64,000 bases of DNA from Gekko japonicus. Lineage: Eukaryota. Shown in pieces: positions 2,916 to 45,110 of this stretch. The translations under genes were made by a program, and so were the position numbers. Position 1 is the first letter of the stretch, and each line of letters begins with the position of its first letter. Location: assembly GCF_001447785.1 (NCBI RefSeq), contig NW_015162558.1:124001-188000 (forward strand), read 5' to 3'. The notes beneath the pieces were generated by a model. That model searched no databases, was not told the origin of the DNA, and saw nothing but the letters and a program-made list of their open reading frames with translations.

Positions 2916-3026
2916 TCACGTGTAGAGGTCAAAATCAACGCGTTTGGAATTGTAGAACTGACCACCAGCGTTCTCCACCTTCCGGCAGTAGACGCCATCG
3001 GGGAAATAGCCCTGGGACACCCAGTC
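2916..3026 (-). CDS. CD2BP2: CD2BP2 last coding exon (GYF motif)
   Basis: [36 protein letters not shown]; polypyrimidine-cag acceptor; TGA at 2918-2916. Confidence 0.95.
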
Positions 3027-6000
3027 CTGGAGGAATGTACAACAGAAGAATATTCAATGGAAATGGTGGCGGGGAGGGGAGAAATGATGAAAGAATTTGG
3101 GGGTGGGGTTTAAAAAGTGTTAAAGATGGGGATTAATTCAACCATTACTAGGACTCACACCTCTGGCTTGTAAACCAAGGTCCTTTCCGCATTAGACCTT
3201 ACATCCTGGGTCAACCTTGTCCCCGAACTTACATCTTACACTACACTTGAGCTCACCCCTGTAATTATCTCAGGGTATTTTTTGTTTCCACATTACATTG
3301 AGGTCGCCCCGGTTTCACCCGCCCACTTGTCCCGGGATAAACGGATGCTGTTATAACCAGGGATAAATGCAAGGTATTGTGTCGCGAGTTGAACTCTGAT
3401 AAAAACCAGGGATGAGATCCAACTGCAGAAAGGACCCAAGAATGACAGCCACAAATATACACACACACACACACAAGTGAAAAGCTAAAGCCAGTAAAAG
3501 ATACTAACATATATAAGAAGCTAACCAAACAATGAACATTAAAACTGAACAATAATTCGAAATCAGTAGCTTCCTGGGAAAATCACTCTAGAAAGAGACA
3601 CAGACTAAACTTGCAATAAAATCAAAAGTCACTATTGGCCACAATTCTTTATGGCATAGAGCAGTACCCAGTCATCCCTATGATGAAAGTCAGAGTGGAA
3701 AACCAGTTCAATCTTAGCCAACAAGGGCTTCATTTCTGTGTGACACTCTAGTCTTTTCCTCTCTATGTTTCAAACTTGAGATACAATTTGTCTTGTTAAA
3801 TCCTGCCCCACTGTCCACCTTTGCAACTGCAGTGGAAGCCGAGTAAGAGACTAGCTCTATGGGGGGTGTTGCATGTTTGATGCTGCTAAGAAGTGTTTTT
3901 CCCCGACTTCTCACAGCATTGCAGTGTGTTTGTGCACCTCCTGGAGTTTCACCATCTTTGCCCTGATCTTTCCTAAGCCTGCTTTGTTCCAAAATTTTGG
4001 GAAAGATCACAGAAAAGCCTAGATGGGTGCCAAAATCCATGTCCAAAAGTCTGGATTTTACTGGTCTTGCCCTTAACAGCAGCCATTTTGCCCAAACAGC
4101 CATTTCCTCTCCCTGTCACCAAGGCCTTTTACTTTCACAACGGAATAGCATTACACTGATATATATGTATATCAGGTTCCCTGAATTCTCAGCTTTCATT
4201 TTAAAGTCAGCCTCCAGCCCCTTTTGTTGAGGAGCTATAAGGGGGGGGGAGGCATACTCCACAAGGAAAGAAGCTAAAGACTTTTTAATGACAGTTGGTA
4301 ATTCAAAGAACCTGATTCGTATATTAATGTAATGGTTTATCGGTAGAACGCTGTTCACTCTCTGCCTTAAACTATGGGGGAAGCCTGCTGTGCTGAAACA
4401 GTATGGCCACTGTGCATTATTGCCACTGCAACAGGAGAAGTACACACGCCTGTCCTTTTGTGAAAAACATCTAAGATACACACAGTCCAAGTCATCTAGG
4501 GAAGCCAGTGAGGACAGTGGCAATACCCATCAAAAGCCTTCAGTGCCAAAAACCCCAGTTACTCCTGGGGCAATGGATCGTATTACTGTTAAAGAATCTT
4601 TGGCGCCAACTGGCAAGTGGCCACTGCGAGGAGGGCTGTGGCAGGCCATGAAGGCATGTGCCACCCCCATAAACTGTGCAATGACAGCATCACATGAGGC
4701 GAAATACCAGGGCCCAAATGTGACTATGGCGTAGCCTGCCAAACTATTTTCCGTCTGTCACAGGAATGTGAGCATCGTGCTTTCCAGGGTGTTGTGACGG
4801 AGTTCTTTGAACTGTCCCCAGCTGCGATTGAGTGGATCGAAAATTTTAGATATTAGTATTTAGAAGGACTGCCCAATTGGTCTGCACACCCATCGCATCC
4901 TTTTGGTTATACTATACGCTTCCTGTGTGTAACTCTGCCATACAATAAATAAAATACAGCATCACACCAACAACAACAACAAACAGATAAAAGGGATCAC
5001 AGGGGATGAGAGGCATGAATGCACATAAAGGTGGCAAATTAGACAGAACAAGCAAGAGCAGAATAAACAGCCGGCCAAAGGGTGGAGGAGCAAAAGGGGA
5101 AGAGGACTGACAGAATGGCAAAAGTGGAGGGGCGGGAGGGAGCGTAAGGACACACAGGAAGATCATTGAAGCAACTGGGACCATAAATATAACACGAGAG
5201 AGGGGAAGAGGCAAAGCGCAAGAGAACTCATAGCGGCTCATCTGCCCCTTTCAGCGCTTACCTGCATCTGGGAACTGCTAAAGGGGCCATAGAGTTCAGA
5301 TGTGTTTGTGTTCTCCCATTTATATTCCCACATCACCTCAGAGATAACGTCGTCACTGCCCGGCTGCTGCGCCTCACGTCCCGCTGCTGAAGAACATTAT
5401 CATGTCAGGTTGCCGACTGCACTGAAAACCCAACGACAAAGAGCTGGAACATTCCATCGGGAGAATCGCAGTTGCTGGGCCGAACTACTTCAGACAACAT
5501 GGGGGGGGAGGGGTTGGTGGACAGGTCCCGGTGTCTTCCTCCAGCCTCTTTACACAGAGAGACACAGCCTATTGGGGAGAATGCCACACCTGAATTCTTC
5601 TCCCCAACCTCCTCCTCTTCTAGGTGCTGCAAAAAACATTCCAGCTTGACTCCCCCGCCAGCAGTCTGAAGTGGTACGGGCTCAGCAAGGAGCTTCCCCA
5701 TGCGGTTCTCCCGATCACATGTTTCAGCTCTAAGGCTCCCCCATTCCTCCCCCTCCCCATAACCAGGCAAGCCATCAGCCTTCCCGCCCTGTCCTCTCAC
5801 CCACTGCTGTCTTCTCCCCCAGCTTTGTTTCATCGATATCCTCCGCAAACATGTCTAGTTCGGGTTCGGGAGCAGAAGGTGCCACCGGAGGATGATCCAG
5901 TGCCCGGAGCCTCAGAGCCAGCTTCTCCCGGGTCTCCTGGTAGATCTCGTAGACCCCTCGTGCCACCATCTGGTCAGCTAGCCCCGACAAGCGCTCCAGC

Positions 6001-8502
6001 TGCTCTTTCCGCTCGGGGGACCCCAGCTTCTGGGGATCGCCCTCCTCCACCGGTTCCGCCTCCTCTGCCTTCAGGCGGCTCCAGGGCCTCCGCTGGCGGC
6101 CGGTGCTCTTGGTCCCACCCTTGTCGCCAAGCCTCTGGATGGCTCTTGCCACCGTCTCGCCGGGCTGCACTAAATCCACCATCCCTTCAAGCAGCTGCCT
6201 CTTGTCCAAAGGGGTCTGGCCAACCTCGAGGCTGTCATCATCATCATCCTCTTCCTCGTCATCCTCCGCAGAATCTCGAGGTGCCTTCTTCCGACCAGGA
6301 GGCTGTTCCTTTATTTTGACCTGGTGGGAAAAAAAGAGCAACGAATTAAAGGTGTGTGTGTGGGGAAGGAAGCAAGATACTTTTCAAAACTTACAGAATG
6401 CGGATCTGGACCTACTGATGCAGCTATGCTCGTCTACGCAAACACCAGGTGCTCCTGTCCTGCAGCAAATGCAAATCCCTGCACTTACATGCTGCAATCT
6501 GGGAATCCACACAGCCTCATTTGCAACATCTTCTCTACGTGATGAGCACAGGAAATTTCAAGGGCCTTGGGGTAGCAGAGATCCTTCATTCCAACAGGCC
6601 TCCACACAGGCTAGACAGGAGGTCTTACCCAATCGATGTTGTCCAGCCAGTTGTCCCGAATCATGGCCTCCTTATTCAAGAAGTAGTTGCCCTCTGAGTC
6701 AAAATGGCCTTCTTCCATCTCCTCCTGCAAATTGAACGGGGTGATCCGGACGCCGTCTTCGTAGTCGATGGTGGCGGATTCCTGTCCTGCAAGGGCAGGT
6801 GAGAAGGGAAATTTTTTACCACTTTCCTATAACTCAACAGTTCCGCACGTTTAGCATTTTAATCAATGAGCTAGGAGGAATGTGTGACGATGAATCCTTT
6901 CGCACCACCAAGTGTCACACCCAGGCATCTCCTTACATAAAAAGTGTGCAGTGGACTACTTTTCAAGGATTTGGGGAAAGGGTTTGCCCACAGTTGTTTT
7001 CTAAGTATCACAACAGCCCTTAAATTGCTCTCTTCCCCCCTCAAGCAACCATACCCACACTGCTGGCATCCCAAACACAAGCCCCACTCTTCACAACTGG
7101 TCTAGGGACTGTAACAATAAACCGAAACGGAACCCCCACTCTTACTTTAACAGCCATAAGGGTCAGAAACATGATGATTTAAGTGAGAATTAAAAAAAAA
7201 AAGGCAAGGATCTCAGAATGTTGAATTCTGACACCAAAACTTGCAATTCTAGCCCTCAGTCCCAAACCTGCACTTACCCTCCACGTCGTCTGATGCAAGA
7301 ATATCATATTTACTGCCTCGCCCTTCATCGTCATCCTCATCATCATCATCTTCCTCATCGCTGTCCAATGAGTGCTTGCCCTTAAAGCGGCTGCCCGGCC
7401 CTCCAACTGCAGGTTCCACTAGCTACATAGGAGACAAAGGTGCAGAAACATCAGTAGTTTCTGGCTTCTTTAGCCGTTACTCTGCTGGTAAGCTGCCCTA
7501 AGTCAAAAATGTATATGTTGCATCTCCAGAGGTAGCTTACAAAGTAAAACACAACAAGACAGCATCAAAATTGTTTTTTTAAAATAACAAGCCATTAAAA
7601 CCCTGCCAGAGTATACAGACAGCATAAAACACTTCGCAGCTCAAGACAATTCTCATAAAACAGTCCTCAGGATAAAACTGTAAAACCAATTTTTAAAACA
7701 TCAAACCCCTTCAATAAAAGCCTTGGTGAAATGTTTTGGCCTGGCACCCAAAAGAGAGCAGGGTAGGTGGTGAGCAAACCTCAAAGGGAAGAGTGCATTT
7801 CACAGGCAAGGTGCCACCACTGAAAAAGCCCTGTCTGTGGTCACCACAAACCTCCCCTTTTGCAAGGAGCATCTTAAGTAGCAGACTAGAAAGTACCGAA
7901 GAACAAAGTCCTTCAAGTATAGACTCAAATAAATAGTCTTCCAGGTTTTGTATAACAAAAATGGTATGACTTGTTCCATGCCAACTTTGTCTCCTGGGGA
8001 CCAAGGTCAGGGAGAGGGAGGAACGAAAGAGGTGTTAAGAACATAAGGGATGCCAATGTTGGATCAGGCCAAAGGCCCATCCAGTCCAACACTCTGTATC
8101 ACACAGTGGCCAGAAATACCAGTGCCATCAGGAGGTCCACCAGTGGGGCCAGGACATTAAAAGCCCTCCCACTGTTGACCCCCCCAAGCACCAAGATGAC
8201 AGAGCATCACTTGCCCCAGAGTCCCTATCTATACCTTGTGGCTAATAGCCACTGATGGACCTCTGCTCCATATGCTTATCTAATTCCCTTTTGAAGCCGT
8301 CCATGCTTGTAGCCGCCACCACTTCCTGTGGCAGTGAATTCCAAGTGTTAATCACTAACACTTGGAGTTAGTTTCCCAAGTGTTTCCCTCTTTCACGCGC
8401 ACACAGTTTCTGAAACTCATCTCTCACCTTCTTCTTTGACAAACTCATTTCCTCTTCATCTTCATTGCCTTGATCCTCAAAGGTCACCTTACGTTTGGAC
8501 AT
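2916..8502 (-). CDS. CD2BP2: CD2 antigen cytoplasmic tail-binding protein 2 (U5-52K, GYF domain), spliced CDS, 377 aa
   Basis: Coding exons 8428-8502, 7278-7422, 6629-6786, 5801-6320, 5262-5386, 2916-3026, all GT-AG with consistent phases (1134 nt). Translation: MSKRKVTF...[12 protein letters not shown]...[16 protein letters not shown]...[12 protein letters not shown]...MWEYKWEN...YGPF...[15 protein letters not shown]...KRVDFDLYT*. Confidence 0.97.
5262..5386 (-). CDS. CD2BP2: CD2BP2 coding exon 5 (start of GYF domain)
   Basis: [26 protein letters not shown]; tandem CAGCAG acceptor; donor CAG|GTAAGC. Confidence 0.93.
5801..6320 (-). CDS. CD2BP2: CD2BP2 coding exon 4
   Basis: Within ORF 5775-6341: VKIKEQPP...[22 protein letters not shown]...[24 protein letters not shown]...LDMFAED; cag| and G|GTGAGA. 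Confidence 0.95.
6629..6786 (-). CDS. CD2BP2: CD2BP2 coding exon 3
   Basis: [52 protein letters not shown]; cag| and |GTAAGA. Confidence 0.95.
7278..7422 (-). CDS. CD2BP2: CD2BP2 coding exon 2
   Basis: [24 protein letters not shown]...[11 protein letters not shown]; tag| acceptor and |GTAAGT donor. Confidence 0.93.
7480..7900 (-). mobile_element. Degenerate L2-like LINE 3' fragment; relative at 34330-34478
   Basis: Shared GGTGCCACCACTGAAAA(A/G)GCCCT core (minus strand RAFSVVAP-like). Confidence 0.55.
8037..8355 (-). mobile_element. CR1 LINE 3' end
   Basis: Reverse complement of the same CR1 3' region. Confidence 0.85.
8428..8502 (-). CDS. CD2BP2: CD2BP2 first coding exon ([25 protein letters not shown])
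   Basis: Acceptor cccag before 8509, ATG at 8502, donor AAG|GTGAGA. KVTF is an RVxF-type PP1-docking motif. Confidence 0.93.
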
Positions 8503-9899
8503 TCTAGCCCTGGGAGAATCAACACAGATTAACAGGTGGATAGGAGGACAGCCTATAGACTCATCTCCAGAATGCACAACACTCAGGAGCCAGCTATCAA
8601 GATGGCTTTTGACCGTCTGCAGACTTCAGCTGAAGTCTGGCTCTGCAACTGATAACGCCCTTATCTCTGCTCTGCACATGTTAAGAGAAAGTTTGTAAAC
8701 ACACTGCTGCTCACTCCATCTTTACAGATCACAGTGGCAAACAGGAGAGGTGTATCGGCGTCACTTAACTGTCTTGTATACCAGAAGTTCCAACACAACT
8801 GAACTGGTTACTGATCACTTTTAAAAAATGATTTCTGTTCCCCCCTTCTACCCAAGATGGAACCCAATCAAATTTAAATCACTGTAATGACTGTGCACCA
8901 GCTATGGCAAATGGTTGCCGTGTTCTAGATGTTTCTGCACTGAAGCTGGCTCATTCAGTGCCTACGAAGGTCTGTTCCTTCTTTACAGTGGCTCCCACCT
9001 TGTGGAAGGGGCCCCTGAAGAGGTGAATTGGGAAGTGTCTATGGCAGGTGCTTTGAGGTCATCTTACTTAACTGGGTTGAAGCTGCAGGCTTTTGGGAGG
9101 GTTGTAGATGGGGCTTGACAGTATTTTGTATGTTTCAATCTTTGAAATTGTAGATTATTTTACTAAAGGAACAAATAACGAAAGGCTACCCAAACAGAAT
9201 GACAAAACATAAGACTGATCCTGCTGCTGCACCTTTTGACAGCTGCTTGGCAGGCAGAAATTAATCAGCTACAGAAGAACCATCAGTGTTACTTATCTCC
9301 TGCTGAAAACCTGCCAACAGGGAGAATGAAAGGAAGTTAAGAACTGGACTGCCGAGACATACACATGAAACTGCCTTATACAGACCATAGGTCCAGCAAG
9401 GTCAGTCTTGTCTACTCAGGGTCTTTCACGTCACCTACTGCCTGATCCTATTATTATTAATGATAGTTATTGTTATTATTACTTGGGAGATGCGAGGGAT
9501 TGAACCTGGGGACCTTCTGCATGCAAAGGAGGGGGTCCTTCACTGAGCCACAGCTCTTCCTCTAAAACAAAGTAGCTACAGGAGAGAACCAGCAGCCCCC
9601 TACTATCACGCCTCCCCTTATCAAAACCCAGGCAAGCTTTCCAGCTTTCCTTCACCCGCATAAGGACTCAACAGTCTTGTACATCGAGCCGTCTCGTTTA
9701 CATATGCAAATCAACTCTAACGCACACCCACCAATCGCTATCAAACCCGTCCCTCTTCCTAGAAAGCTCCCCAAGGCTCCAGCCTTTCTCACAGAGGAGT
9801 CCAAGATGGGAACGAGCCTGAGGGCACAGCTCAGCAGTTCCAAGGAACATTAAGAGTCCCCATTTTCTCCCCTCCAAGTGGGCTCTCCGTGATCCCCAC

Positions 9900-10250: not shown

Positions 10251-11399
10251 CCTTCACAGCTAAAAAAGAGAATAAACTAATAATAACAATTGGATCGTAC
10301 AATTGTGTAGGAGTTCTGTGGTCTTTTTTTATATACTAATGCCCCCTATCCTTTAGAAACTTCGATCCCACTCCTGTAGGCTCCAGCCCGCTGCTACAGA
10401 TAAGGACACGCAGAAGGGTAGCCCCGTTACTCTGTTGCAGTAAAAGCTGCTAGGACTCCCCACATTTTACCGTAGCAGCCTTTTTTTGTGGACTGAATCC
10501 CACGAAAGTCTGTCACAATGAAGTAGAGATCTAAACCTTGCTACTAAGAAGTAAATCCCATGTTAAATCCCTGGCTTACTCCCAGGAAAGTGTCTTTGGG
10601 ACTGTAGCCTAAATCCACTAGCCTTTAAAGGGAGCCAAAAACAAGATTCTTGTTCGTAATCCTACACTGGCGTTAGAAAAAGTGTACTCTTCCAATGTTT
10701 CCAATTATTTTCTTGCTGTAATCTATATCTCCCTGTTATGGCTATGTTTTATTGAGCTTTGTGCACTGTAAAAAAGTATAAAAATAAAATTTTTAAAAAG
10801 GGGGGAAAAAGAAAAATTCTTTGAGCGCCTCATAAAACCAGCATAGAGAACTACCACCAAAACATCATAGCCTCTACCAAGAGCTCCCTCTCTTAAAAAT
10901 CGGCCTAGCCTAAGGCAACGATAGAAATACAGTCACCACAACACGTTCACGGAGGATCAATCAGGGTGTTTTGCCGGGAGGCAACGAAGTCCATTCCATT
11001 CCTGCCAATCCGGATCCTCTCTCTTCCTGGGACTTTGCAGGGGCCTGAAACTTCTCAGCCTTCGACTTGATCCATAAATGTAGTGGCAGCCTGGAATTCA
11101 ACAGGTGGCGATGCATCTGCCTGTCAGGAAGCTATCTGGTTCTCCGGGAGCTCTGATTCTGGATGTGCTATGGAAGGGCCTGTAACTGTCCATTGATGCA
11201 TCAATATATGACCTATCAATACGGAGGGGAAGCGAACTCATAAAAATGGACACTTTATAGGAATCACTGTTAACTTGGACATATTTTAAATAAACTTGAT
11301 CCAGAGCCACCACCGCCCGCCACCCCGGGGGAAAACAACCCCTTCCTTTTCTGCAGTAGCTTCTTCCTCTGATGAACACAGTCTCTCTTAAAAAAACCA

Positions 11400-12761: not shown

Positions 12762-12915
12762 CCCTGCATTCTTTTATTCCTTTCTACCTTTCCCCCAGCC
12801 CCATGCTCATATTCATAACCCTTACAACTTTCTATTGTTTCCTTAGATTCTGATGCTCCCCCCCCCCCATCCTCATCTTCCATTATCATCTCTACACTTT
12901 CAGGGTCTGACCACC

Positions 12916-13536
12916 ATGAAACTCCACATCTCCAGCGCTTTGGTCTCTTCCCGCCTGGAACGCGCCCCAGATCGGCAGGGGTTGCTGTATAAAAAGAGCA
13001 GTCGCAGTTCCTCCTACCACCCGTGTTGGTGCACGCTCTGGGGTAATGTTCTGTTCCGTCGAGAGCGAGCTGGAGACCGGGATCCTCCTAAACTCATCAT
13101 CTTGGAAGGCTGCACCGTGGAGCTGCTAGACTCCACATCTGAACCATATGCCTTTGAAATTTCTTACCCCTGTGGGTTACCTGGTAGCCGGGCATACCAG
13201 ATGGCAGCTGAGAATCAAGAAACTCTGGAGGGCTGGGTGCGAGCGCTCAGCACCGCAGGGTTTGGATACCTCCGAGCCTTGGCTGCCGAGCTGGAAGGGC
13301 AGTTTCGAATGCTGAAGAACCAACCGCCTCTCAAATTGGATGGAGCCCCGGTAGCCTCAAAGAACTGCAAGCTACTCCTTCCAAAACTGGTGGCTGAAAT
13401 GGAATCCAAAGGGACAAATTTCTCACAGCTCCACCAAGAATTTGGTGAGGACATTGTGAGGTTAAGGTATATGTGGCAAGAAAAGAAAGCTGGCAAGAAG
13501 CAACCTACAAAAGAGAGTTTGATAGATCTGGGGTAG
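12916..13536 (+). CDS. Sesquipedalian/PHETA (FAM109, IPIP27) family PH-domain endocytic adaptor, 206 aa; candidate third paralogue
   Basis: Kozak ccaccATG just after acceptor tttcag|G (12904). Family hallmarks: MKL start, GLLYKK, W-x-x-L-x-GN-x-LF, IILEGCTVEL, AAENQETLEGWVRALS, YLRALAAELE coiled coil, and F&H motif FSQLHQEFGEDIVRLR. Single coding exon as in PHETA1/2. AATAAA at 13704-13709. Confidence 0.92.
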   Translation: MKLHISSALVSSRLERAPDRQGLLYKKSSRSSSYHPCWCTLWGNVLFRRERAGDRDPPKLIILEGCTVELLDSTSEPYAFEISYPCGLPGSRAYQMAAENQETLEGWVRALSTAGFGYLRALAAELEGQFRMLKNQPPLKLDGAPVASKNCKLLLPKLVAEMESKGTNFSQLHQEFGEDIVRLRYMWQEKKAGKKQPTKESLIDLG

Positions 13537-13703
13537 GAAAAAATCGGCAATACCAGACACTTGACTACAACGAGCAAGTCCAGAGAATTGGAGTCTATTC
13601 TGGGGAAGGGAAAGACACTGCTAGGAATAACTTCCTGAATCAACTGTTTGATCTGCATCTGTGAAACAGACACCTTAGGTATTTTTTTAAAAGAGAAGAT
13701 TTT

Positions 13704-13709
13704 AATAAA
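13704..13709 (+). terminator. Polyadenylation signal of the PHETA-like gene
   Basis: AATAAA about 170 nt after the TAG. Confidence 0.6.
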
Positions 13710-16310: not shown

Positions 16311-16453
16311 ATTAATGATCTAACTTGATCAATTATCTACTTCACTGATACCCACTTTTCTCCCCAATGGTGACCCAACGCAGCTCACAACATCTTTGTC
16401 TGCTCGTCCACTTTATCCTCATAACAGACCCGCAAGGTAGGTTAGGCTGTGAG

Positions 16454-19534: not shown

Positions 19535-20257
19535 TCAAAAGTACGTGTCTTGCAGCACAGACGCCGTCGGAGCATCCCCGTCTTTTCCTTCCTCACTGGG
19601 TGGCGGAGGGGCCGATTTGGGTTCCTTTTTCCTCAGCGACAGTTTTTGGTCCTTCTTCAGCCGGGCTTCCTCTTTGGCGCGTTCCTTCTGCTGCTTCTTC
19701 TCCCGCTCTTTTTCCTGCCTCTCCCGCTCTTTTTCCTTCTTCTCCCGCTCCTTCTGCAGCTTCCGCTCCCGCTCCCGCTCCCTCTCCTGCTTCTCCTTCT
19801 CCAGCCTCTCCTGCCTTTCCCGCTCCTTCTCTTTCCGCTTCTCCTCTTTGCTGCTGCCCCCGGTCGGCTTGGGGCCACCGAGGGGCATGTTGTTCCCTGT
19901 CGGGGAGGGCAAGGCGGGGTGGAGCCCTTCGGACACCACCACCTGGCTCTGGGCGGCGGGAGGGGCCGGAGGGGGAGCCACGGAGGCAGCCAAGGTGCCC
20001 ACGGAGTGTGCTGGGGAGAAGGAGGGACCGCTCAGGCTGCCGTGAGTAACCCTCTGCTTCAGGCCCGTGAGACTCAAGAGGCTGGCGCTGGCCGTGAGGG
20101 GCGGGTTCATGCGGTGGCGCTCCTCGTGGATGGCTCGCGAGCCGTGGAGCCGCCGGGAGGGCTTGTACTGGAGCTCACCCCGCGTCTCTCGCCACTTCTT
20201 CAGCTGGGTGGCGTTCTCTCGTTCTATGAGGGCTTCGGTCACTGGGAGAGTCATCAC
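19535..20257 (-). CDS. TBC1D10B: TBC1D10B last exon
   Basis: [47 protein letters not shown]...[13 protein letters not shown], an E/K/R coiled coil, then KLSLRKK...QDTYF*. Confidence 0.95.
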   Translation of the reverse strand: MMTLPVTEALIERENATQLKKWRETRGELQYKPSRRLHGSRAIHEERHRMNPPLTASASLLSLTGLKQRVTHGSLSGPSFSPAHSVGTLAASVAPPPAPPAAQSQVVVSEGLHPALPSPTGNNMPLGGPKPTGGSSKEEKRKEKERERQERLEKEKQERERERERKLQKEREKKEKERERQEKEREKKQQKERAKEEARLKKDQKLSLRKKEPKSAPPPPSEEGKDGDAPTASVLQDTYF

Positions 20258-23200
20258 CTGAACAAGGAGGGGGAGGGAAACGGAGGTGAGAAGAAGAGTC
20301 CCGGTGGCATCTCCTCTCTCACCACAGCCCCTCTGGCCTACCACACATACCTTGACCTGGCACCACCCCACAGAGACACTGGGAAACGTGCACATTCAAG
20401 ACTATGGCAGGACCTCCCCTTCCCCACCCACAGAAGCCCACCAGGCAGTTGACACTCAAGTTGCATTTCCCCCCTTGTCTCGTTTTCCTTTTTGTTTTGT
20501 TTTTTAATTCTCTGTCTTATTTTGAACTTGTTCAGTACGTCCATTAAACAGAACTTTGTCTTCTCGGAGACAAAAAAAAATCTACCGCTTGGCAAGACGC
20601 AAGCTGGAAGAGAGGAACCCCCCGCTTAATCTTTTCCTCCTATATATGCCGTGTTTCCCCGAAAATAAGACACTGTCTTATATTTATTTTACACACTAGG
20701 GCGTATACCACAAATGCATAGAAAACCTGCTAGGGCTTATTTTGGGGGTAGGTCTTATTTTCAGGATGTTCTTGTACTTCGCATCTCTGTGGTCCGGTTG
20801 TATTTAGTGAATATTATTTTCCTCCTGGCTGTGCTCCAGCTCAAACGCACCCTTCCCAAGGGCAACCCGTATGTCCCCCCCCAAAAAAAGAGAGACAGAT
20901 TTGCAGCTTCGGGAAGACCAGAGTAGAGAACGTCAGAACACAAGAAGAGCCCTGCTGGGTGAGACCAAAGGCTCGTCAGGTCCAGCATTCTGTTCACGCA
21001 CTGGCTGACCACTCGGGAGCCCCCGAGCGGGATGACTGCAACAGCAGCCTCCAGTCCGTGCTCCCCTGCAACTGCCTCTGGTGCTGGAAGGAGGAGATAA
21101 CAGTCGTGACTAGCAGCCATCGGCAGCCCTGTCCTCCATTAATTTGTCCACTCTCCTTTTAAAGTCTCCCAAACGGCCTTAAACATTTCCTTCTGGACCC
21201 ACCTTTCTTTCACTCCAGCTTACACCCCTCACTCTGACTGACGCTGGGCTTTTAAGAAATGCAGAGGGAAAGAACAATGCCGCCTTCTCCTTAATATCTA
21301 CTTCGACCCGGAGATCAGTGACGTTCCTTAAACCACCACCTCCCCCGCCCCCGAATCATAGGGAATTATGGGAAGCAACACCAAACATTTCTATTGACAT
21401 CCAGGTAACAGCCCTCTTTTATGGGCATGAGATTCACTTGAAAGAAAGCAACAACAGGATTTTGAGTGCATTCGACTCAGGTTTAAAATTAACGTGTCCT
21501 TATATCTGACCATGTAAATGTTGTGTCTGATATCTGAAGGTGCTAAAGTTCTGTTGTGAACAGACAAGGTCGAAATCTAGTAAATTCTTACAAGGGGCCA
21601 TGTGCCTGGCTGCTTACTCTACAAGTGTGGAATCTAATGTATCGAAAGGATGCACACAGAATTAAACTCTGTTGGTCTTCAAGGTGCCGCTGGACTCAAA
21701 CTTTGTTCTGCATCCTTCCAAGACAGGTTCCTAGTCCTCATGGCTGCCAACAGAAATCTAGAAATTCGAACTGATGATGACCCAGAAACTAGAGCAATCA
21801 CCTACCACAAATGGACTCTGCCAAGACGGAAATGACCAACGCGGGCACCATACGGGACCAAGCCCCTTTGTGTAAATGTGGTGTTTCTTAGGAATACATG
21901 CCTCATCTGTAAACCCTTAGCCACGTCCTGCCAGAACTTCTGCATGTGCCATCGTGTTTTCAGCCCAGGATCCAACTTTCTCCCCTCCAGCTTCACCCCA
22001 CTTGCTTCTCTGTTTAGCACATCGTCCCCAGGCCGGAGCTCTCACCTCATGGACCAAGTTGTCCTCTTGCATAGTCTGGAATGGCAGGTTTCGCAGCTTC
22101 TCCATCGTCTCGTACATGCCCTGGCACGAGCGCAGCTTGTCGACTGAGCCCAGGGTGTTCCGCAGCAGCACCAGGCCCACCCGGAAAACTATCTTCACCC
22201 CTGTGTGGATCACAAGCCGAGAGAGAGAGAAGAGTGTAACAGGCTGTATACTGGGGGGAGGCGGGAAGCGCAGCCTTCCTCTCTGTGAGATGCTGAGATG
22301 CAGGGAAGGAAAGAGAGGCGGGGGACTGTGCAGGGGGCACCTGGGGATTTCATCAGATGAATGGACAAAGCAGATCCCAGGTGCTCTTTATAGCACTTTA
22401 GGATAACCATGTCAAGCCTGGGATTGGGTAGAGGGTAGCCGGGGAACCCAGGCGCTCTTATCATTTTCGTCAAACATGTTCCTAGGCCTCAGACTACAAC
22501 CAGGTCAGCCAGTGGCTTGGGAATCCTCCTCCTGTTCAATAATGGAAGTTGAGTTTCTAGAAAAAAGAGCAGTTCTGTCTCTGGGGAGGCCGCTTTCCCT
22601 GTCAACTGGGAGGGAAAGGACACCAAGTGGCCAAACGCGCAAGGCTTTACGGGGACGGGAGGCCGAGTCTCACCTTCGCAGAAGAACATGTCCCAAACAC
22701 GCAGCACGGAGCACCAGGGCAAGGTCCGGGAGAAGATGCACATAAACCACTCGGTCATGTACAGGATGGGGTCGATCTTGTACCTCTTCAGGTGGCGGTA
22801 GGCAATGGGGGACACCCGCCGCAGGAGAGCAAAGAAGATCTCCCCGTCCAGCTGGATTGCCTCCTGCACGAGACACATTTTGGGGTGAAGAGGAAGTTGG
22901 AGACCCTGCAAACAGCGCCCTCTTTCTGTTCCCCCCGCCTGCTCCCGCTTTCCCTCCCATCACTGCCCTCCACTGAGAAAAGAGGAGCCAGAGGTTCAAA
23001 AGGTCACACAGTCTGGACATGCATGCACTGTACGCATCTACCCAAACGGTTAAGTATCTACAGCTTCTGCAGGAGGGCAGGGGAAAGATGTGGTCTAACT
23101 GTTATGAGATGGGGAAGGAGGCAGAAACTCTGCAGCCCAGTAGCAGCCCCAGAAAGGCAGGAGGGTAGTCTTTTTTATGCAGCTGTTCAAGGCAGTGTAA

Positions 23201-26200
23201 AAAGGCAAGGGGAACACAGAGGTGAACCTTTTCCTGGAGTGGGCATACGGCGATGCTGGGGGAAAGTGTCACCTGATCCCTGCCTGCTCCGCAAGCTGTT
23301 AAAGGCACAGAGCCTTCAGTTGTACAGAACCCTCGAGGGCCGGAATCAAACAGCCAGCCAGCCAACCCTCTCTCTCCCTCCCCGGCTTATATGAAAAGTT
23401 TTTGGTTTAATTAACGACACAACTTCACTTGTGACCAGCGACTCCATTGCAGTTCTCAAACAGGGCTGTCTCCCCCATTCAAGAAACCAATGAAATCGAC
23501 GTATGTGCTTGCACAGGAAGGGTTCTACTGATGGAAGCAACCAGTTACCTTTTTAGTCAATTAAGCAACCTGATTACTGAGTAAATGTTGCAGCTCCTTT
23601 CTCAAACTAGGTTAATCTTTAGGAAACGGAGGTCAGATTTGCCTGCCAGCTGCTGCACACAAGACATTACAAAACCGGCACCAGGAATCTGAGCACACCG
23701 TGTGTCTGTTCTCTACCAGGAGATTTCAAGTTGACTGGTATGTGTGTGTGTGTGGGGGGGGTGTACACGAGAGAAAGAAAATCAGGCTGCAAACAGAATG
23801 ATAATTTTTTTAGACCTCAGTCATGTGAATTGGTTTTGGCAGAAAAACAAGAGGTAAAATACACGTATGTGTGCTCTTTTTAAAAGCACATGTTTGCACT
23901 GCTGAATATTTCTAATCTAGAGGCTTCCTGACCCCTCCCAGGGGCCTCTGCCCTCTGGAAAGGCTCCCCTTTCTCTAGAAAGCGGAGTGCAAGGGAATTC
24001 CAGGATACCGCCCTCTAGGCACAGCCAGCTCCAGGAGGACAAAGCGGGGAAACTCCTGTCCAAGAAGGGTTTTAGGGCGGCACAGAGGGCATCTCCTTTA
24101 TGAAATACTGAAAGCCACTAATCCCCCCTTTCCTTCCAGGAATATGTGGTCACACTCACCAGTCCCGCACTGTAGTACCCAGGGAGATATTTGTCACAGA
24201 TCTGCACCAGGCACCAGAAAGCTTGCTGGGGAGAGACCAAGACAGACAGACCCTTAGCAGGAGCCCCCTGATCAGCCACACCCTCCCCGCCTACAGTCTC
24301 CATCCGAGAATCCCGGCTTGCTCCCCCACCAAAGGCGATCAAGTGCTATTAAGGTCAAGCCGGTGAGCCTTCTATCCCGGGGCCATCCTCTCTCCTCTCC
24401 TGGCTGCGACGTTTCTTCCTCAAACCACGGGCAGATGGGTGCTGACCGTCCCCCCAGAAGAAATTAACACAGGACTACTTAACATAAAAAACCCGGATGC
24501 CAGTCGTGAACAATGTTCCCTCTAAGCTGTGGAGAACTTCTGCATGTGCCATCGTGTTTTCAGCCCAGGATCCAACTTTCTCCCCTCCAGCTTCACCCCA
24601 CTTGCTTCTCTGTTTAGCACACCGTCCCCGGGCCGGAGCTCTCACCTCATGGACCAGGTTGTCCTCTTGCATAGTCTGGAATGGCAGGTTTCGCAGCTTC
24701 TCCATCGTCTCGTACATGCCCTGGCACGAGCGCAGCTTGTCGACTGAGCCCAGGGTGTTCCGCAGCAGCACCAGGCCCACCCGGAAAACTATCTTCACCC
24801 CTGTGTGGATCACAAGCCGAGAGAGAGAGAAGAGTGTAACAGGCTGTATACTGGGGGGAGGCGGGAAGAGCAGCCTTCCTCTCTGTGAGATGCTGAGATG
24901 CAGGGAAGGAAAGGGAGGCGGGGGACTGTGCAGGGGGCACCTGGGGATTTCATCAGATGAATGGACAAAGCAGATCCCAGGTGCTCTTTATAGCACTTTA
25001 GGATAACCATGTCAAGCCTGGGATTGGGTAGAGGGTAGCCGGGGAACCCAGGCGCTCTTATCTTTTTCGTCAAACATGTTCCTAGGCCTCAGACTACAAC
25101 CAGGTCAGCCAGTGGCTTGGGAATCCTCCTCCTGTTCAATAATGGAAGTTGAGTTTCTAGAAAAAAGAGCAGTTCTGTCTCTGGGGAGGCCGCTTTCCCT
25201 GTCAACTGGGAGGGAAAGGACACCAAGTGGCCAAACGCGCAAGGCTTTACGGGGACGGGAGGCCGAGTCTCACCTTCGCAGAAGAACATGTCCCAAACAC
25301 GCAGCACGGAGCACCAGGGCAAGGTCCGGGAGAAGATGCACATAAACCACTCGGTCATGTACAGGATGGGGTCGATCTTGTACCTCTTCAGGTGGCGGTA
25401 GGCAATGGGGGACACCCGCCGCAGGAGAGCAAAGAAGATCTCCCCGTCCAGCTGGATTGCCTCCTGCACGAGACACATTTTGGGGTGAAGAGGAAGTTGG
25501 AGACCCTGCAAACAGCGCCCTCTTTCTGTTCCCCCCGCCTGCTCCCGCTTTCCCTCCCATCACTGCCCTCCGCTGAGAAAAGAGGAGCCGGAGGTTCAAA
25601 AGGTCACACAGTCTGGACATGCATGCACTGTACGCATCTACCCAAACGGTTAAGTATCTACAGCTTCTGCAGGAGGGCAGGGGAAAGATGTGGTCTAACT
25701 GTTATGAGATGGGGAAGGAGGCAGAAACTCTGCAGCCCAGTAGCAGCCCCAGAAAGGCAGGAGGGTAGTCTTTTTTATGCAGCTGTTCAAGGCAGTGTAA
25801 AAAGGCAAGGGGAACACAGAGGTGAACCTTTTCCTGGAGTGGGCATACGGCGATGCTGGGGGAAAGTGTCACCTGATCCCTGCCTGCTCCGCAAGCTGTT
25901 AAAGGCACAGAGCCTTCAGTTGTACAGAACCCTCGAGGGCCGGAATCAAACAGCCAGCCAGCCAACCCTCTCTCCCTCCCCGGCTTATATGAAAAGTTTT
26001 TGGTTTAATTAACGACACAACTTCACTCGTGACCAGCGACTCCATTTCAGTTCTCAAACAGGGCTGCCCCCCACATTCAAGAAACCATTGAAATCGACGT
26101 ATGTGCTTGCACACAGGAAGTGTTCTACTGATGGAAGCATCCTTTGTTTCTAGATGCGGACATAAAGGAGGAGAGGGAGATAACCCCTTAGGGAAAAGGT

Positions 26201-29200
26201 AAGCAGTGGCAGATGCTACCTGTAAAACAAAGTCTGGGGAACCCCCCCCCCCCCAAAAAAAAACCAGTTACCTTTTTAGTCAATTAAGCAACCTGATTAC
26301 TGAGTAAATGTTGCAGCTCCTTTCTCAAACTAGGTTAATCTTTAGGAAACGGAGGTCAGATTTGCCTGCCAGCTGCTGCACACAAGACATTACAAAACCG
26401 GCACCAGGAATCTGAGCACACCGTGTGTCTGTTCTCTACCAGGAGATTTCAAGTTGACTGGTATGTGTGTGTGTGTGGGGGGGGTGTACACGAGAGAAAG
26501 AAAATCAGGCTGCAAACAGAATGATAATTTTTTTAGACCTCAGTCATGTGAATTGGTTTTGGCAGAAAAACAAGAGGTAAAATACACGTATGTGTGCTCT
26601 TTTTAAAAGCACATGTTTGCACTGCTGAATGTTTCTAATCTAGAGGCTTCCTGACCCCTCCCAGGGGCCTCTGCCCTCTGGAAAGGCTCCCCTTTCTCTA
26701 GAAAGCGGAGTGCAAGGGAATTCTAGGATACCGCCCTCTAGGCACAGACATCTCCAGGAGGACGAAGCGGGGAAACTCCTGTCCAAGAAGGATTTTAGGG
26801 CGGCACAGAGGGCATCTCCTTTATGAAATACTAAAAGCCACTAATTCCCCCTTTCCTTCCAGGAATATGTGGTCACACTCACCAGTCCCGCACTGTAGTA
26901 CCCAGGGAGATATTTGTCACAGATCTGCACCAGGCACCAGAAAGCTTGCTGGGGAGAGACCAAGACAGACAGACCCTTAGCAGGAGCCCCCTGAGCAGCC
27001 ACACCCTCCCCGCCTACAGTCTCCATCCGAGAATCCCGGCTNNNNNNNNNNNNNNNNNNNNNNNNNNNNNNNNNNNNNNNNNNNNNNNNNNNNNNNNNNN
27101 NNNNNNNNNNNNNNNNNNNNNNNNNNNNNNNNNNNNNNNNNNNNNNNNNNNNNNNNNNNNNNNNNNNNNNNNNNNNNNNNNNNNNNNNNNNNNNNNNNNN
27201 NNNNNNNNNNNNNNNNNNNNNNNNNNNNNNNNNNNNNNNNNNNNNNNNNNNNNNNNNNNNNNNNNNNNNNNNNNNNNNNNNNNNNNNNNNNNNNNNNNNN
27301 NNNNNNNNNNNNCGTCCCCCCAGAAGAAATTAACACAGGACTACTTAACATAAAAAACCCGGATGCCAGTCGTGAACAATGTTCCCTCTAAGCTGTGGAG
27401 TCTTGTGAGCAAACATTCTACTTTGTGAGCTACCGGCATGAAAGTTGCGAGCAAGCGATTTGGCTGCTGCATACATTAGTTTGCTCTGGCGCCCTCCTTC
27501 CTGAGCTGAGACAACAATGTGTGAGCCAGAGGCTAAAAAACAGTGAGCTAGCTCACGCTAACTCAGCTTAGTGGGAACCCTGGTCGTGAATAGGTGTGGG
27601 CCTTGTTTGACTAGAATGGCCGCGCTCTGCCATTCAGCGGCAGGCTGCCAGTGCTCTGGTTCAGCTAGGAGGGAGCAGGATGCTGACCACACACGGGAGA
27701 GCTTCAAGAGGCAAAGGCTCTGCGGAGAAGGAGCCACTGGGCAGGCCTGGTGCCACGCCCGAGGAGCCCAGAACTTCTGGATCTGGCGCTGCCACCCCTC
27801 GCCCAAAGAAAAGGGGGGGGGGGACTAAACCAACCAAGCAAAAACCTCCAAGGTAAGTTTAGAAAACTTATTATTGAGGGCCAAAAGTTAAAACCATAAA
27901 TAAAAGAATGTTTATTTCAAAGACACATAAAACCATTGTAGGGGCCCAAATAAAACCTCCTAAAGTGTTCGAAGGGACAAATGCACAAGTAAGAACAATG
28001 TAGGACCCGACACATTTCAGCTCACAAGAGCCTTCTTCCGAGGTCAAATAGTACAAAGAACAAAATATACCGAGCAACAAAGTCCCTGTAACACATGTAA
28101 GGCAATAAACAATAATATAGGACCAAAAATGGAATGTTCCAATCTGGAATTGAATGACGCACCAAAAGATTTTTATTTGGGGCCACAAATATACCTTGCC
28201 TTGTGTCAGAAGTAGTTGCATATACTGGAAACAACATCAGGACCAATATGTACCTTCCAGTTTAGGTCCTAAGAGTGCAAGTAAAATTGCCTTATCAGGG
28301 ACCGTGTGACATCAATGTTTCCTTTGGAGGCTGCTGCCGTCGCTCACACAGATTTCAGACTGAGGCCATGCAACAGATACATTGACCAGCCAAGGATCTC
28401 AGGCTCCTTTCTACACTTCCCCACTATGCCCCACACCTTTCAGAGAGCACCTGAACCTGACAATGCAGTGGAACAGTTCCTCACCTCTGCGGGCATATTC
28501 ATCAGCAGAACCGCAGCAACAGGCGCCTGGGCTTGGCAGTACCCTTCCTCTGGCCGGTAGATGGTGTAGGCTTTCAGGATGCGGTAGAGGTCCTGCTGCC
28601 TGTGTGAGAGAGACAGAGGGGAGGATGAGAGCCAGGAACCTAGAACTTTTCTCCAGGCTCAAGATGGCGTCTAATCCAGGTATAGACCAAGAGGCTCAGA
28701 GGAGCATTTGAAGAGGGTATATAGCGCTTTGGCCTCTTGGAGACACCATTTCCAACCCAGGGCCCACCTAGCGATGCAGAGCTGCACACCAGTCTTGGGT
28801 GTGGGGCTGTAGGTTTAAGCCTGGACTCTGCCAAGTACCTAGAAGGGGCGTCTTTGCAAAGGCTCCTTAGGGGAGGGGCTGTGGCTCAGTGATGGAGCCT
28901 CCGCTTTGCACACAGAAAAACCCAGATCCAATCCCTGGCATTTCTTCTGAACAGTTCAAATAGACAAGCTTAGCCCAAGCTCGTCAGAAGCTTGGAAGCT
29001 AAGCAAGGTTGGCCACAGACAGTACTTAGATGGGAGACTTCCGAAGAAGTCCAGGGTTGCTACCCAGAGGAAGGCAATGGCAAAACACCTCTGCTCGTTT
29101 CTGGCTGGGAACACGGCATGGATGGGGGTTGCCATGAGTCGGTTCTGACTTGAAAGTGGGCTGCTGTTAGTAACTGGGCCTATGATACAAAGTAAGTCAA

Positions 29201-32200
29201 TGCATTTCCCAGTTCATGGGTCAAAGCACCACTGGGAATGCTGAAAGAGAGATGGGTTTTGTTTTGTTTTTTGTCAACAGTGCCTTACTTACTATGGGTC
29301 CAGTGTCCTCAGGTACAGGGAGAAAAGAGAGGAGCAAGAGCCACGGTGGGAAGGTGGAACAGGTGAACAGTGTACACATGCGTGTAGGAGTTCGGCAGCC
29401 AGGGAGGAATCTAGTATGTGGCTGATGCCTGCCTGACCTCGTGTAGCGACACTCTTCCCCTCTGCCGTCCACTCACCCATGGCCTCCCCGATCAACAAAT
29501 ATCTCGTGCAACGGGAACTGCCTGTGCAGGTCTTTCTCAATCACATCAAGCCACTTGGGATCTCCAGCTTGGCGCTCCAGTTCCTAATAAGACAGGCAGA
29601 CAGAGAGAGTAAAGAGAGTATGCTTGCATATTGTAGGCATTACAATACCAATAGCCCATGGTAGGCTCCATTAGATACTACAGCTATTATGAACATTGAA
29701 AATCTTCATTGATATCTTTGAAACGTCACCAGAGGAAATGAATTACTGAGAGACAGTATTTGTCTCACATCTCTGTTCGGAAGAAGAGCTACCTTCGAAA
29801 CGGCAAGACATTCTGGAGATCACCGTCAATTTTTCGTTATTATGTATATTATTACTGTTCACTTTTTGTGTAATTTATTCTTTGAAGAGATTTATTAAGC
29901 GTCACTTGTTCAGAGTTCTTCCTGGTTGAGGACAGCCAGATTTCTCTCGGGCCGGGGACCCCCAGGAAGTTCTTGTTTCCTGAGCACAGTCCTCTTCCAA
30001 GGGCATACTGGGAGAGGCGGTCCTGAAGGTACGTGGTTAAGATTATTATTATTATTATTATTACAATATTAGATTTATATCCTGCTGTCCCCCACTAATG
30101 TGGGGCTCACACCGGGTTCCGACATATAATAAATAGAACACATATCAGATTAAAACATATCAATTAAAAACAAGTCCAGCAATACAATTCCTAAGATGGN
30201 NNNNNNNNNNNNNNNNNNNNNNNNNNNNNNNNNNNNNNNNNNNNNNNNNNNNNNNNNNNNNNNNNNNNNNNNNNNNNNNNNNNNNNNNNNNNNNNNNNNN
30301 NNNNNNNNNNNNNNNNNNNNNNNNNNNNNNNNNNNNNNNNNNNNNNNNNNNNNNNNNNNNNNNNNNNNNNNNNNNNNNNNNNNNNNNNNNNNNNNNNNNN
30401 NNNNNNNNNNNNNNNNNNNNNNNNNNNNNNNNNNNNNNNNNNNNNNNNNNNNNNNNNNNNNNNNNNNNNNNNNNNNNNNNNNNNNNNNNNNNNNNNNNNN
30501 NNNNNNNNNNNNNNNNNNNNNNNNNNNNNNNNNNNNNNNNNNNNNNNNNNNNNNNNNNNNNNNNNNNNNNNNNNNNNNNNNNNNNNNNNNNNNNNNNNNN
30601 NNNNNNNNNNNNNNNNNNNNNNNNNNNNNNNNNNNNNNNNNNNNNNNNNNNNNNNNNNNNNNNNNNNNNNNNNNNNNNCGCCCCGACCCGGGCCGGTCGC
30701 CTCTGCGTGCGCTCCCTACTCCCCCACCACCACCCGGCAGCCTGAAGAGGCAGAGAAGCGCCCAACAGCTGGCGGGCCATGGAGGAGGAGGCGGCGGTAG
30801 CAGGAGGAGAGCCCGCAGGAGGAGGAGGGAGGCGGCGATCGCCCAGTTAGGGTGGGGCGCAGTTTGGCGCCCCTGAGGGCCAGCGCGCCCTAGGCGAGCG
30901 CCTACTTTGCCTAGCGGGCGAGCCGGCCCTTAATGTAATGGTAGGAGACTCCTGCCCAATGAGCACCTTTATTTTTGTTTATTACAGAAACTGAGATTTC
31001 TACTTTCAACTTTTATTTTTCCAGCTTTTCAGATGACAAAAACTGAGGGGGTGGGGTGTTAAAGCGGCACACAGTGCAGCCATTAGCAGCTCTCTCTCTC
31101 TCCACAGTGTTGGGTATACTCACAATTCTGTTCACAGAAAACTTTGACGTTAATACTTCTAATTTTCATAAATGTGCCAAACAGTGCAATTTTCTTTGAC
31201 AGCTAAATTATAAATGACGCATTTTAAAACAGTAAAATAAGTTTAGGCTTGAAAAGTAACTAAATATTGCATCTATTTCAACCTTTCCCAAAATGTCTTT
31301 CAAAAAAGTTCCACGGCTTTAAAATGTCCAGAAATTTAACATCTCGAGTATGAAAGTAAAACAAAAAAAGACACTCCAGAATACCTCAAACTTCCCCTGA
31401 TTTTGATCCAGGAGTTCCTTGCTGTTTGAGAGAAGCTGCCACGCTTTGCCACGGAGGGAAGACGGAATCCCCTTCCGGCAACGCAGTTTCACCTACAAAG
31501 AGATGGGGAAGCGATTAAACAAATACAGCAAGCAAATGAGCAAGCAAGGTAATCAGAAGACCGCTTGGAATCTTTGCCTCATAGCACCCAAGAATGCAGT
31601 CTGGATCTCTGCTCACCTTCTGGAATCTGCGCGACAGCCATTTGTCCCAGTGGGCAAACATATCCAGCCACTTCAGTTCCCGTTGTCTGCCCACATCCAC
31701 AGGGATAGCGCTCTCGCTGCAGAAAGAAAATAAGCAAAAGAGGACGTCCTGAGCTGGGAAGAGGAGGGCTGTGAGCGCTACCCTGAGCGGAACATCCACA
31801 TCAGACACGTAAGACACGTGGATGCACGTGCTTATTTGGCACCATTTACGCTCTTTCTGCTATTTGTGGCAAGGGACATGCAGCGCACTCAAACTGCTCC
31901 CCCCCCCCCAAGACCTTCTTAGCCTGTCCTCCAACCCCTGAGGGACATGGCTACAAGCCCGTTACAGCCAGTTATTCAGCCACGCTTTGCGGAGTGGGCT
32001 TGTATAGCAAAGAGGCTATGGGACATGCGGCAGACTTTTCTCAAGACCCTGCTTGCTCGCTACACGGGTATCCTCTGAAACTGCCTTCTCACGCCACAGC
32101 TTCACAGTCTCCACGATCCTCACCCCCATCCCCCGTCAAAGGCGCAAGAGAACCTAGCAGACCGGGCCACCCCCCTGAGCCAGCATACGTTTGGCTGCTG

Positions 32201-44234: not shown

Positions 44235-44419
44235 GACTACTGGGGGTCCCTCCCCCCCGGAGGGGGAAATGCAGCCTAGCTGCCCAGCCAAGGCCTCAGC
44301 TTGGGGGGAAGGGAGGGAGCCAGCCGCCCCGCGCTCCCCCCCCTTGCCTGGATAGAAGTACCAGCCGTAGGAGAGGCAGCCACCCCAGCCTGCGCGCGCA
44401 TCTCCGGGCTCTGCGGCCC

Positions 44420-45110
44420 CAAACTCAGCCAATGAGCGCCAAAGGAGAAAGTAAGCTCGGCCAATCAGAAAAGAGGAAGGGGAAAGCGGACCAAGAGCCT
44501 CGGGGATGACGCGGGGGACTCATCGAGACGGCTCCAATCGGAAGACCAAACGGAAGAGAGTAGGACGCGGTGCACAGCCAATCGGTAACGCGGCACGGGA
44601 GATGGCGACGAAAAAGAGGAAGGGCGGTGAGAAGGAACTCAGCAAAAAGAGGGGGGGGGGACTAACGACAAGCGCCCGCCAATCGGAAATGGCGTCTCAA
44701 ACCCAGAAATCCGTTTTCTTAACCTAAGGATGGCTTATCCGTTTAGCCTATAAGAAGGAAGAATTTGCAAGAATTCTCCAATCACCTGCAGGGGTGGGGA
44801 ATTAACTCTTCTGTGTGTCAGGAGCGCACGTGATGCTTGCAGGCGGGACAACCGGGAATAAACGTCAACCTCGATGAAGCCGTACCAAAAATGTTGTCAG
44901 AGTCTTTGAGAGGCGTGCTCTTGAACCAATGCAATGCACGGAACGGGTCCAACGGAAGGCCAGAGACGTTTGTTGTGGGCGTGTTGGGAACCTGATGGGC
45001 CAATAGTGATTGGACTGAGTACCTAATTGACATCATCCGTTGCCAATCAAATTAATGTATTTTAAGTCAGGCCGCTTGGGTGCCAAAGTCTGAGACCAAT
45101 AAGAAAACAC
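44420..45110 (-). promoter_or_regulatory. TBC1D10B CpG-rich promoter with a CCAAT-box cluster
   Basis: About ten CCAAT pentamers (44429, 44461, 44534, 44578, 44679, 44778, 44926, 45000, 45043, 45096), YY1-like AAATGGCG near 44687, CACGTG near 44827. Confidence 0.7.

Follow-up and report, generated by a model that had tools for sequence, protein, structure and literature searches.

The sesquipedalian proteins Ses1 and Ses2 bind the 5-phosphatases OCRL and INPP5B by docking their F&H helix on the ASH-RhoGAP-like module of these enzymes. In our study, a 64,000-nucleotide stretch of the genome of Gekko japonicus (contig NW_015162558.1, positions 124,001 to 188,000; hereafter the window, in which all coordinates are counted) was found to contain a gene of the same PHETA/sesquipedalian family (Ses, IPIP27, FAM109), and this gene was found to belong to a third lineage beside PHETA1 and PHETA2. 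PHETA1 (Ses1/IPIP27A/FAM109A) is part of the 12q24 block MYL2-CUX2-PHETA1-SH2B3-ATXN2, and 16p carries ATXN2L-TUFM-SH2B1 (PMC12898128). PHETA2 (Ses2/IPIP27B/FAM109B) is present at the 22q13-type locus in the order SEPTIN3-NAGA-PHETA2-SMDT1 (PMC6842931). Only two genes were found in zebrafish (Ates et al., 2020; PMC7272357). The zebrafish pheta1 contains the PPPxPPRR motif and adjoins sh2b3 on chromosome 5. The gene named pheta2 (zgc:153733), which was knocked out in the same study, is located on chromosome 3, is devoid of PPPxPPRR and keeps the F&H motif. Its protein has diverged further than Pheta1 from both human proteins, and its locus is not syntenic with that of either human gene.

Phylogenetic position and distribution of the gecko gene

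The maximum-likelihood tree was built in IQ-TREE under LG+C20+F+G4 from 51 proteins and 239 columns and was rooted on seven invertebrate Ses proteins; zebrafish Pheta2 lay outside this sample. All vertebrate proteins formed one clade (support 100/100), and the invertebrate Ses/IPIP27 proteins formed a single outgroup clade (100/100). Clade A (100/99) contained PHETA1 of fishes, frogs, turtle, crocodile, squamates, and mammals together with PHETA2 of platypus, otter, and rattlesnake. The gecko protein was found in a separate clade B (99/99, 28 rows), where it grouped with the other squamates (100/99) and then with the turtles (100/96), and these reptiles joined the frog and ruminant proteins (98/96). 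The other branches of clade B were those of salamanders, a caecilian, sharks, lobe-finned fishes, and ray-finned fishes. When the reptile clade-B proteins were forced into clade A, the tree was rejected by the approximately unbiased (AU) test (delta lnL 28.9, p=0.031). Clade B is a third lineage of jawed-vertebrate PHETA genes, sister to PHETA1 and PHETA2 together, and in the tree its duplication falls after the split from invertebrates and before the split of sharks and bony vertebrates. The features of a PHETA1 orthologue (grouping with PHETA1, PPPxPPRR, SH2B3 and ATXN2 as neighbours) were not found for the gecko gene, which falls in clade B and lies among CD2BP2, a TBC1D10-type gene, and MYL11. 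Those of a PHETA2 orthologue (grouping with the mammalian proteins, a SEPTIN3-NAGA-SMDT1 locus) were likewise not found, PHETA2 being in clade A and the locus in the window being a different one. A preliminary description of the stretch had proposed a third paralogue that is neither PHETA1 nor PHETA2, and had named nesting inside one of these two clades as a case that would overturn it; the support for clade B and the AU test uphold the proposal, and no such nesting occurred.

All significant matches to the gecko protein were sesquipedalian proteins; the relatives described here are the best 120–150 matches of each search. The closest named relative was that of Gekko kuhli (P0002), with 92% identity, followed by other geckos with 88% and 87%, and the frames of these genes were undisrupted. 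Full-length relatives were found with 55–88% identity in other geckos, lizards, amphisbaenians, and snakes and with 52–56% identity in turtles, so that over 30 species of squamates and turtles have an orthologue at 52–92% identity. The genuine PHETA1 proteins from these same species (Pogona, Python, Elgaria, Candoia, Anolis, and Pelusios) were only about 45% identical to the gecko protein, over the PH domain only. In an exhaustive profile hidden Markov model search of 1.84 billion representatives, the reptile group was found as one cluster with 343 bits and the next match had 190 bits. Naming of the matches and a further profile search placed many of the next-best representatives in a second vertebrate group, which corresponds to clade B. 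The proteins of clade B typically contained an MKLH or MKIH start, an F&H helix, no PPPxPPRR, and mostly a LIDL, LIDF, or LINF tail.

Among fishes, clade B was found in horn shark, white shark, bichir, reedfish, paddlefish, sturgeons, gar, bowfin, coelacanth, and lungfish as well as in many teleosts, often with two copies in a species. The tetrapods besides squamates and turtles were caecilian, newt, axolotl, frog, and ruminants, the last with cattle, sheep, goat, deer, and musk deer (a cluster of 51 members). The gene had been described as kept in this reptile; it is indeed retained there, but it is no peculiarity of reptiles, being present also in sharks, fishes, amphibians, and ruminants. 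PHETA2 and clade B were both found in the genomes of single species. In Crotalus adamanteus, PHETA2 (P0171) and the clade-B gene (P0058) are located on different chromosomes. The clade-B protein of cattle (P0231) is encoded on a chromosome of 42,904,170 bp, which we take to be cattle chromosome 25 (BTA25) of the assembly UMD3.1. The cattle PHETA2 gene is located in the SEPT3-NAGA-SMDT1 block on BTA5 (PMC6842931). Matches of 212–220 amino acids to a turtle query in rabbit, golden mole, and mouse lemur were considered as clade-B proteins and rejected, as they contained PPPxPPRR and ENGCAVW and belong to PHETA1.

No clade-B protein of birds, crocodilians, primates, or rodents was found among the best matches listed in these protein-level profile and homology searches. 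The case for repeated loss in these four groups is weaker than it sounds, being drawn from those listed matches. The 50% cluster that is represented by the musk deer protein may also conceal proteins of non-ruminant mammals. The 16p11.2-type region is thinly covered in bird assemblies, which weakens the absence from birds, and ATXN2L has likewise been reported missing in chicken (PMC12730607). For human, the absence rests on the lack of a primate match among those listed and on the published gene order, and we infer that the lineage was lost in the human lineage.

The public labels of clade-B proteins were found to be inconsistent and included sesquipedalian-1, sesquipedalian-1-like, sesquipedalian-2-like, mylpfb isoform, and sperm-associated antigen 8. 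Nearly all of the squamate and turtle orthologues carry the NCBI label sesquipedalian-1-like, as had been guessed beforehand. No description of a third PHETA lineage was found in a full-text literature search, and publications on PHETA2 deal with no more than two genes in vertebrates. It seems that the gene models are already public under various names and that the lineage itself has gone without description in the literature searched. The gecko gene is real and conserved, the core idea of a third PHETA lineage is right, and its retention is broad.

Architecture, proposed role, and alternative explanations

The matches of the gecko protein in PDB were the PH domains of cytohesins and PEPP1. 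An AlphaFold2 model based on 21 orthologues had a mean predicted local distance difference test (pLDDT) score of 64, and the PH core reached 80–90. Seven strands forming a PH fold were predicted at residues 20–98, followed by a helix at 101–134, disorder at 138–167, and a second helix at 169–192. The continuous first helix provides the helical region that directly follows the PH domain in this family. The region of the second helix opened with N-F-S-Q-L-H-Q-E-F-G-E-D-I (N168 to I180), in which F, H, and F occupy positions 2, 6, and 9, respectively. A 13-residue F&H consensus has been published, and in peptide arrays these three positions proved obligatory or preferred for binding to the OCRL ASH-RhoGAP module (PMC6743453). 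The gecko segment fits this consensus, and F169 and H173 were invariant in 21/21 reptile orthologues and in 15/15 clade-B proteins from shark to cattle. In the alignments, the gecko protein was devoid of the PPPxPPRR pacsin-2 motif, and its linker was devoid of the SPKLWPKR-like motif that is found in clade-B proteins of non-amniotes.

The mean pairwise identity among the 21 squamate and turtle orthologues was 74% in the PH domain, 63% in the helix extension (residues 114–135), 55% in the F&H helix, 53% in the C-terminal tail, and 24% in the linker. As judged from these sequences, conservation was concentrated in the modules that would be functional in a PHETA-type protein. The reading frame, about 200 codons long, was kept intact across squamates and turtles, and intact orthologous open reading frames (ORFs) occur in more than 40 species, which places the gecko ORF far beyond chance. 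Together these observations offer strong, if indirect, evidence for constraint on the gene.

We hold with good confidence that the gecko ORF is a functional PHETA/sesquipedalian gene of clade B with a single coding exon at a 16p11.2-type locus. By its architecture and motif, which are like those of Ses1 and Ses2, the PH domain and adjoining helix would associate with endosomal membranes, the F&H helix at the C-terminus is predicted to enter the ASH-RhoGAP-like module of OCRL and INPP5B, and the clade-B protein may act as an endosomal adaptor for both phosphatases. As PPPxPPRR is absent and the LIDL tail is kept, this adaptor would probably link the phosphatase with another partner, perhaps clathrin. 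A clathrin box consists of L-hydrophobic-x-hydrophobic-[DE] in a disordered region and binds the terminal domain of clathrin. The tail of the gecko protein was LIDLG, that of turtles LIDLE, and that of Podarcis LIDFD; LIDL, LIDF, or LINF tails were also found in the clade-B proteins of shark, bichir, gar, teleosts, coelacanth, lungfish, and amphibians, and the alignments contained no such tail in PHETA1, PHETA2, or the ruminant clade-B proteins. In gecko a glycine followed by the free C-terminus stands at the acidic position of this consensus. Tails of this kind are also found at the end of some invertebrate Ses proteins, which makes an ancestral origin of the LIDL-type tail and its loss in clade A probable.

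Several observations weigh against this reading. The clade-B proteins of amniotes evolve fast and have long branches in the tree. The conserved basic pair RRW in strand beta2 of the PH domain is replaced by PCW in squamates, and the squamate linker is shortened. Taken together, these features suggest that the function may have shifted. Lamprey and hagfish fell outside clades A and B at a node without resolution, and the evidence for synteny in other species consists of indirect hints. A functional drift of clade B in amniotes is possible. In its full form this alternative holds that the gene is real but has moved away from the OCRL/INPP5B adaptor role through its PH surface or new partners, and it draws on the long stem branch of frog, ruminants, and sauropsids, on the change from RRW to PCW, on the loss of the SPKLWPKR-like linker motif, which is conserved from shark to newt, and on the ruminant proteins, which are also without the LIDL tail. 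The basic motif was found in clade B of shark, paddlefish, gar, teleosts, coelacanth, lungfish, and newt and was absent from the gecko, turtle, frog, and cattle proteins. Despite this fast evolution, F169, L172, H173, and G177 of the F&H helix were invariant, which argues that the helix predicted to bind OCRL is the constrained part of the protein, and we regard the shift as unlikely.

The lineage is older than the split of sharks and bony vertebrates, and in the gecko window MYL11, which is a paralogue of the PHETA1 neighbour MYL2, and a TBC1D10-type gene are found near the clade-B gene; both observations fit an origin by whole-genome duplication. We infer that clade B arose in the early vertebrate genome duplications. 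Because the node that joins cyclostomes, clade A, and clade B is without resolution, the duplication is not assignable to the first or the second round (1R or 2R). The same node leaves room for a small-scale duplication before or within early vertebrates that came to lie near paralogous genes by chance. This we consider improbable, as the invertebrates form one outgroup clade (100/100) and all vertebrates another, PHETA1 and clade B adjoin members of the same family (MYL2 and MYL11), and SH2B3/SH2B1 and ATXN2/ATXN2L are present on the same chromosome arms.

An unexpressed or decaying ORF, that is, a relic of clade B heading for the loss seen in most mammals, would agree with the fast evolution of the amniote branch and with the repeated loss suggested by the matches listed (none in birds, crocodilians, primates, or rodents). 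It is very improbable in view of the intact frame of 206 codons with its good start context and poly(A) signal, the 92%, 88%, and 87% identity to other geckos without disruption of the frame, and the modular pattern of conservation with invariant F and H. A recent lizard-specific retrocopy or translocated copy of PHETA1 or PHETA2, to which the intronless coding sequence could point, is hardly credible and is effectively refuted by the single coding exon found throughout the family, the splice acceptor ahead of the ATG, the union of the gecko gene with those of sharks, fishes, amphibians, turtles, and ruminants in clade B (99/99), the rejection of a PHETA1/2 placement in the AU test, and the low identity of squamate PHETA1, confined to the PH domain.

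Gene structure and neighbouring genes in the window

The features of the locus are collected in Table 1. Read from the sequence of the window, the ORF extends on the + strand from the ATG at 12916–12918 to the TAG at 13534–13536 in a single exon. The context of the start codon was ACCACCATGA, with an A at position −3. The coding exon begins at 12904, since the polypyrimidine tract ends in AG at 12902–12903. A second in-frame ATG was present at 12853, upstream of the splice acceptor; the translation start was placed at 12916 because all orthologues of lizards and turtles begin with MKLH. The 206-codon ORF, the acceptor, the poly(A) signal, the PH domain, the coiled coil, here as a predicted helix, and the F&H motif given in the preliminary description were all recovered in every detail, including the exon start at 12904 and the position of F169 at nucleotide 13420. 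A 5′ non-coding exon of the PHETA-type gene was not located in the window. A CpG-rich stretch at 9751–10500 had a CpG observed/expected ratio of 0.76–0.81, and our guess is that this stretch, at about 9.75–10.5 kb, is a candidate promoter common to CD2BP2 and the PHETA-type gene. In snakes (P0025 and P0052) the methionine of MKLH was found to be replaced (TKLH or IKLH) and the protein began 12–18 residues further upstream; therefore the start codon has moved in the snake lineage.

Table 1. Coordinates of the PHETA-type gene and of the neighbouring genes in the window.
Feature	Position	Strand	Description
CD2BP2	2919..8625	-	Exons 8371-8625 (start MSKRKVTF), 7252-7422, 6614-6826, 5778-6383; motif scans
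CD2BP2 GYF domain	5241-5396 + 2919-3053	-	Split over two pieces; Pfam GYF match on both
Polypyrimidine tract and splice acceptor	12857..12903	+	AG at 12902-12903, ahead of coding exon; direct reading
Coding sequence	12916..13536	+	206 codons and TAG, one coding exon; 100% match to called protein P0001
PH domain	12973..13254	+	Residues 20-113; Pfam PF00169, E=6.5e-12, 46.3 bits (cutoff 25.1)
Long helix	13216..13317	+	Residues 101-134; C-terminal helix of PH domain and extension, the "coiled-coil" region of the family; AlphaFold2 prediction
Disordered, fast-evolving linker	13327..13416	+	Residues ~138-167; pLDDT <50, 24% identity
F&H-type motif	13417..13455	+	Residues 168-180; F169, H173, F176; at start of predicted helix 169-192
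C-terminal LIDLG tail, clathrin-box-like	13519..13533	+	Residues 202-206; L202 and I203 nearly invariant in reptiles
3′ untranslated region	13537..13709	+	Runs to AATAAA at 13704-13709; direct reading
TBC1D10-type gene (TBC1D10B by position)	19538..44519	-	Putative first exon 43362-44519, last coding exon 19538-20395; ORF listing
TBC-domain exons of TBC1D10-type gene	28443-28658, 25092-25559, 22492-22959	-	Pfam RabGAP-TBC, E=1.3e-9 to 1.5e-17
MYL11/MYLPF exon (fast skeletal myosin regulatory light chain)	58599..58799	+	Pfam EF-hand; best PDB matches skeletal-muscle regulatory light chain / MYL11, E=5e-11

The neighbouring genes were identified from motif scans of stop-to-stop frames, and the candidate stretches were then checked in Pfam and PDB. 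A Pfam scan of the long start-to-stop ORFs across the window gave no match, because exons are short. The PHETA-type gene was found on the strand opposite to that of its two neighbours, with the 5′ side of CD2BP2 on one flank and the 3′ end of the TBC1D10-type gene on the other. The genes CD2BP2, TBC1D10B, and MYLPF follow one another in this order in human 16p11.2 and in cattle BTA25 (PMC10683324), and the presence of CD2BP2, the TBC1D10-type gene, and MYL11 therefore marks the window as a 16p11.2-type block. With these identifications, the CD2BP2-TBC1D10B locus named beforehand was confirmed.

About 2.6 kb of the TBC1D10-type gene (− strand) was present as a tandem duplicate with 99–100% identity within 21933–27400, where 21933–22232 corresponds to 24533–24832 and 23539–23838 to 26262–26561. 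The duplicated TBC-domain exons scored identically in Pfam. The second copy enters the N gap at 27042–27312, so that an artefact of assembly and a real duplication of exons are equally likely. A translated stretch of about 60–80 residues recurred at least seven times on the − strand, with sites at 16422–16896, 27348–27557, 32425–32858, 37613–37963, and 45532–45861; a family of interspersed repeats is the likeliest source. About 14 kb (44520–58598) separate the first exon of the TBC1D10-type gene from MYL11; in human this gap is only a few kb. The long ORFs at 55265–55957 and 56056–56496, which lie in this gap, gave no match in Pfam.

Comparison with zebrafish pheta2 and other family members

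Every teleost protein recovered other than pheta1 belonged to clade B, including a cypriniform and two characiform copies. The homologues of 16p11.2 genes in zebrafish cluster on chromosomes 3 and 12 (PMC3484866), and atxn2l and sh2b1 are located on chromosome 3 (PMC12730607), which is thus a counterpart of human chromosome 16. The lack of PPPxPPRR, the divergence, the locus on chromosome 3, and the teleost relatives in clade B all point to clade B as the place of zebrafish pheta2. We consider it very likely that this gene belongs to clade B and is not the orthologue of human PHETA2, as judged from its reported features and its teleost relatives. The lineage had been called uncharacterised in the preliminary description, which is probably wrong, zebrafish pheta2 (Ates et al., 2020) most likely being a member of it. 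Three teleost clade-B proteins were annotated as isoforms of mylpfb, and their recorded Pfam matches were of PH type only; these labels hint that the clade-B gene adjoins mylpf in teleosts. The teleost clade-B proteins were longer than the gecko protein (about 250–290 amino acids) and kept the SPKLWPKR-like linker motif.

Taken as a whole, we consider it likely that jawed vertebrates started out with three PHETA lineages, the third of which, at the 16p11.2-type locus, has an ancestral clathrin-box-like tail and no pacsin-2 site, was lost in human but kept in fishes, amphibians, reptiles, and ruminants, and includes zebrafish pheta2 as its orthologue. If this is true, the double knockout of pheta1 and pheta2 in zebrafish does not model the loss of human PHETA1 and PHETA2. 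The zebrafish pheta1/pheta2 mutant is the only in vivo vertebrate model, and its assumed orthology would need revision if pheta2 belongs to a lineage lost in human and fishes are without a true PHETA2. Clade B would also provide a natural adaptor variant, with no pacsin-2 site and with a clathrin-box-like tail, that could be used for dissecting the routing of OCRL, and the lineage deserves its own name in genome annotation. The result is unsurprising in kind, as differential loss of ohnologues is common.

Among the described family members, PHETA1 is like the gecko gene in its N-terminal PH domain, helical extension, and single coding exon, in its C-terminal F&H helix, where positions 2, 6, and 9 are occupied by F, H, and a bulky hydrophobic residue, and in adjoining a gene for a myosin regulatory light chain in the paralogous block. 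It differs in belonging to the other clade and in matching the gecko protein only over the PH domain, at about 45% identity; it also contains PPPxPPRR and an ENGC(A)VW stretch, neither of which is found in the gecko protein. PHETA1 is about 250–280 amino acids long, whereas the gecko protein has 206 amino acids and ends with the LIDL tail that PHETA1 is devoid of. PHETA2 of mammals and squamates has the same architecture as the gecko protein and is also without PPPxPPRR, but it belongs to clade A with PHETA1 and contains no LIDL tail. The invertebrate Ses/IPIP27 proteins form the outgroup clade (100/100) and contain long variable linkers, whereas they resemble the gecko protein in having a PH domain and an F&H helix, and several of them end with LIEL, LINL, or LIDL-like residues.

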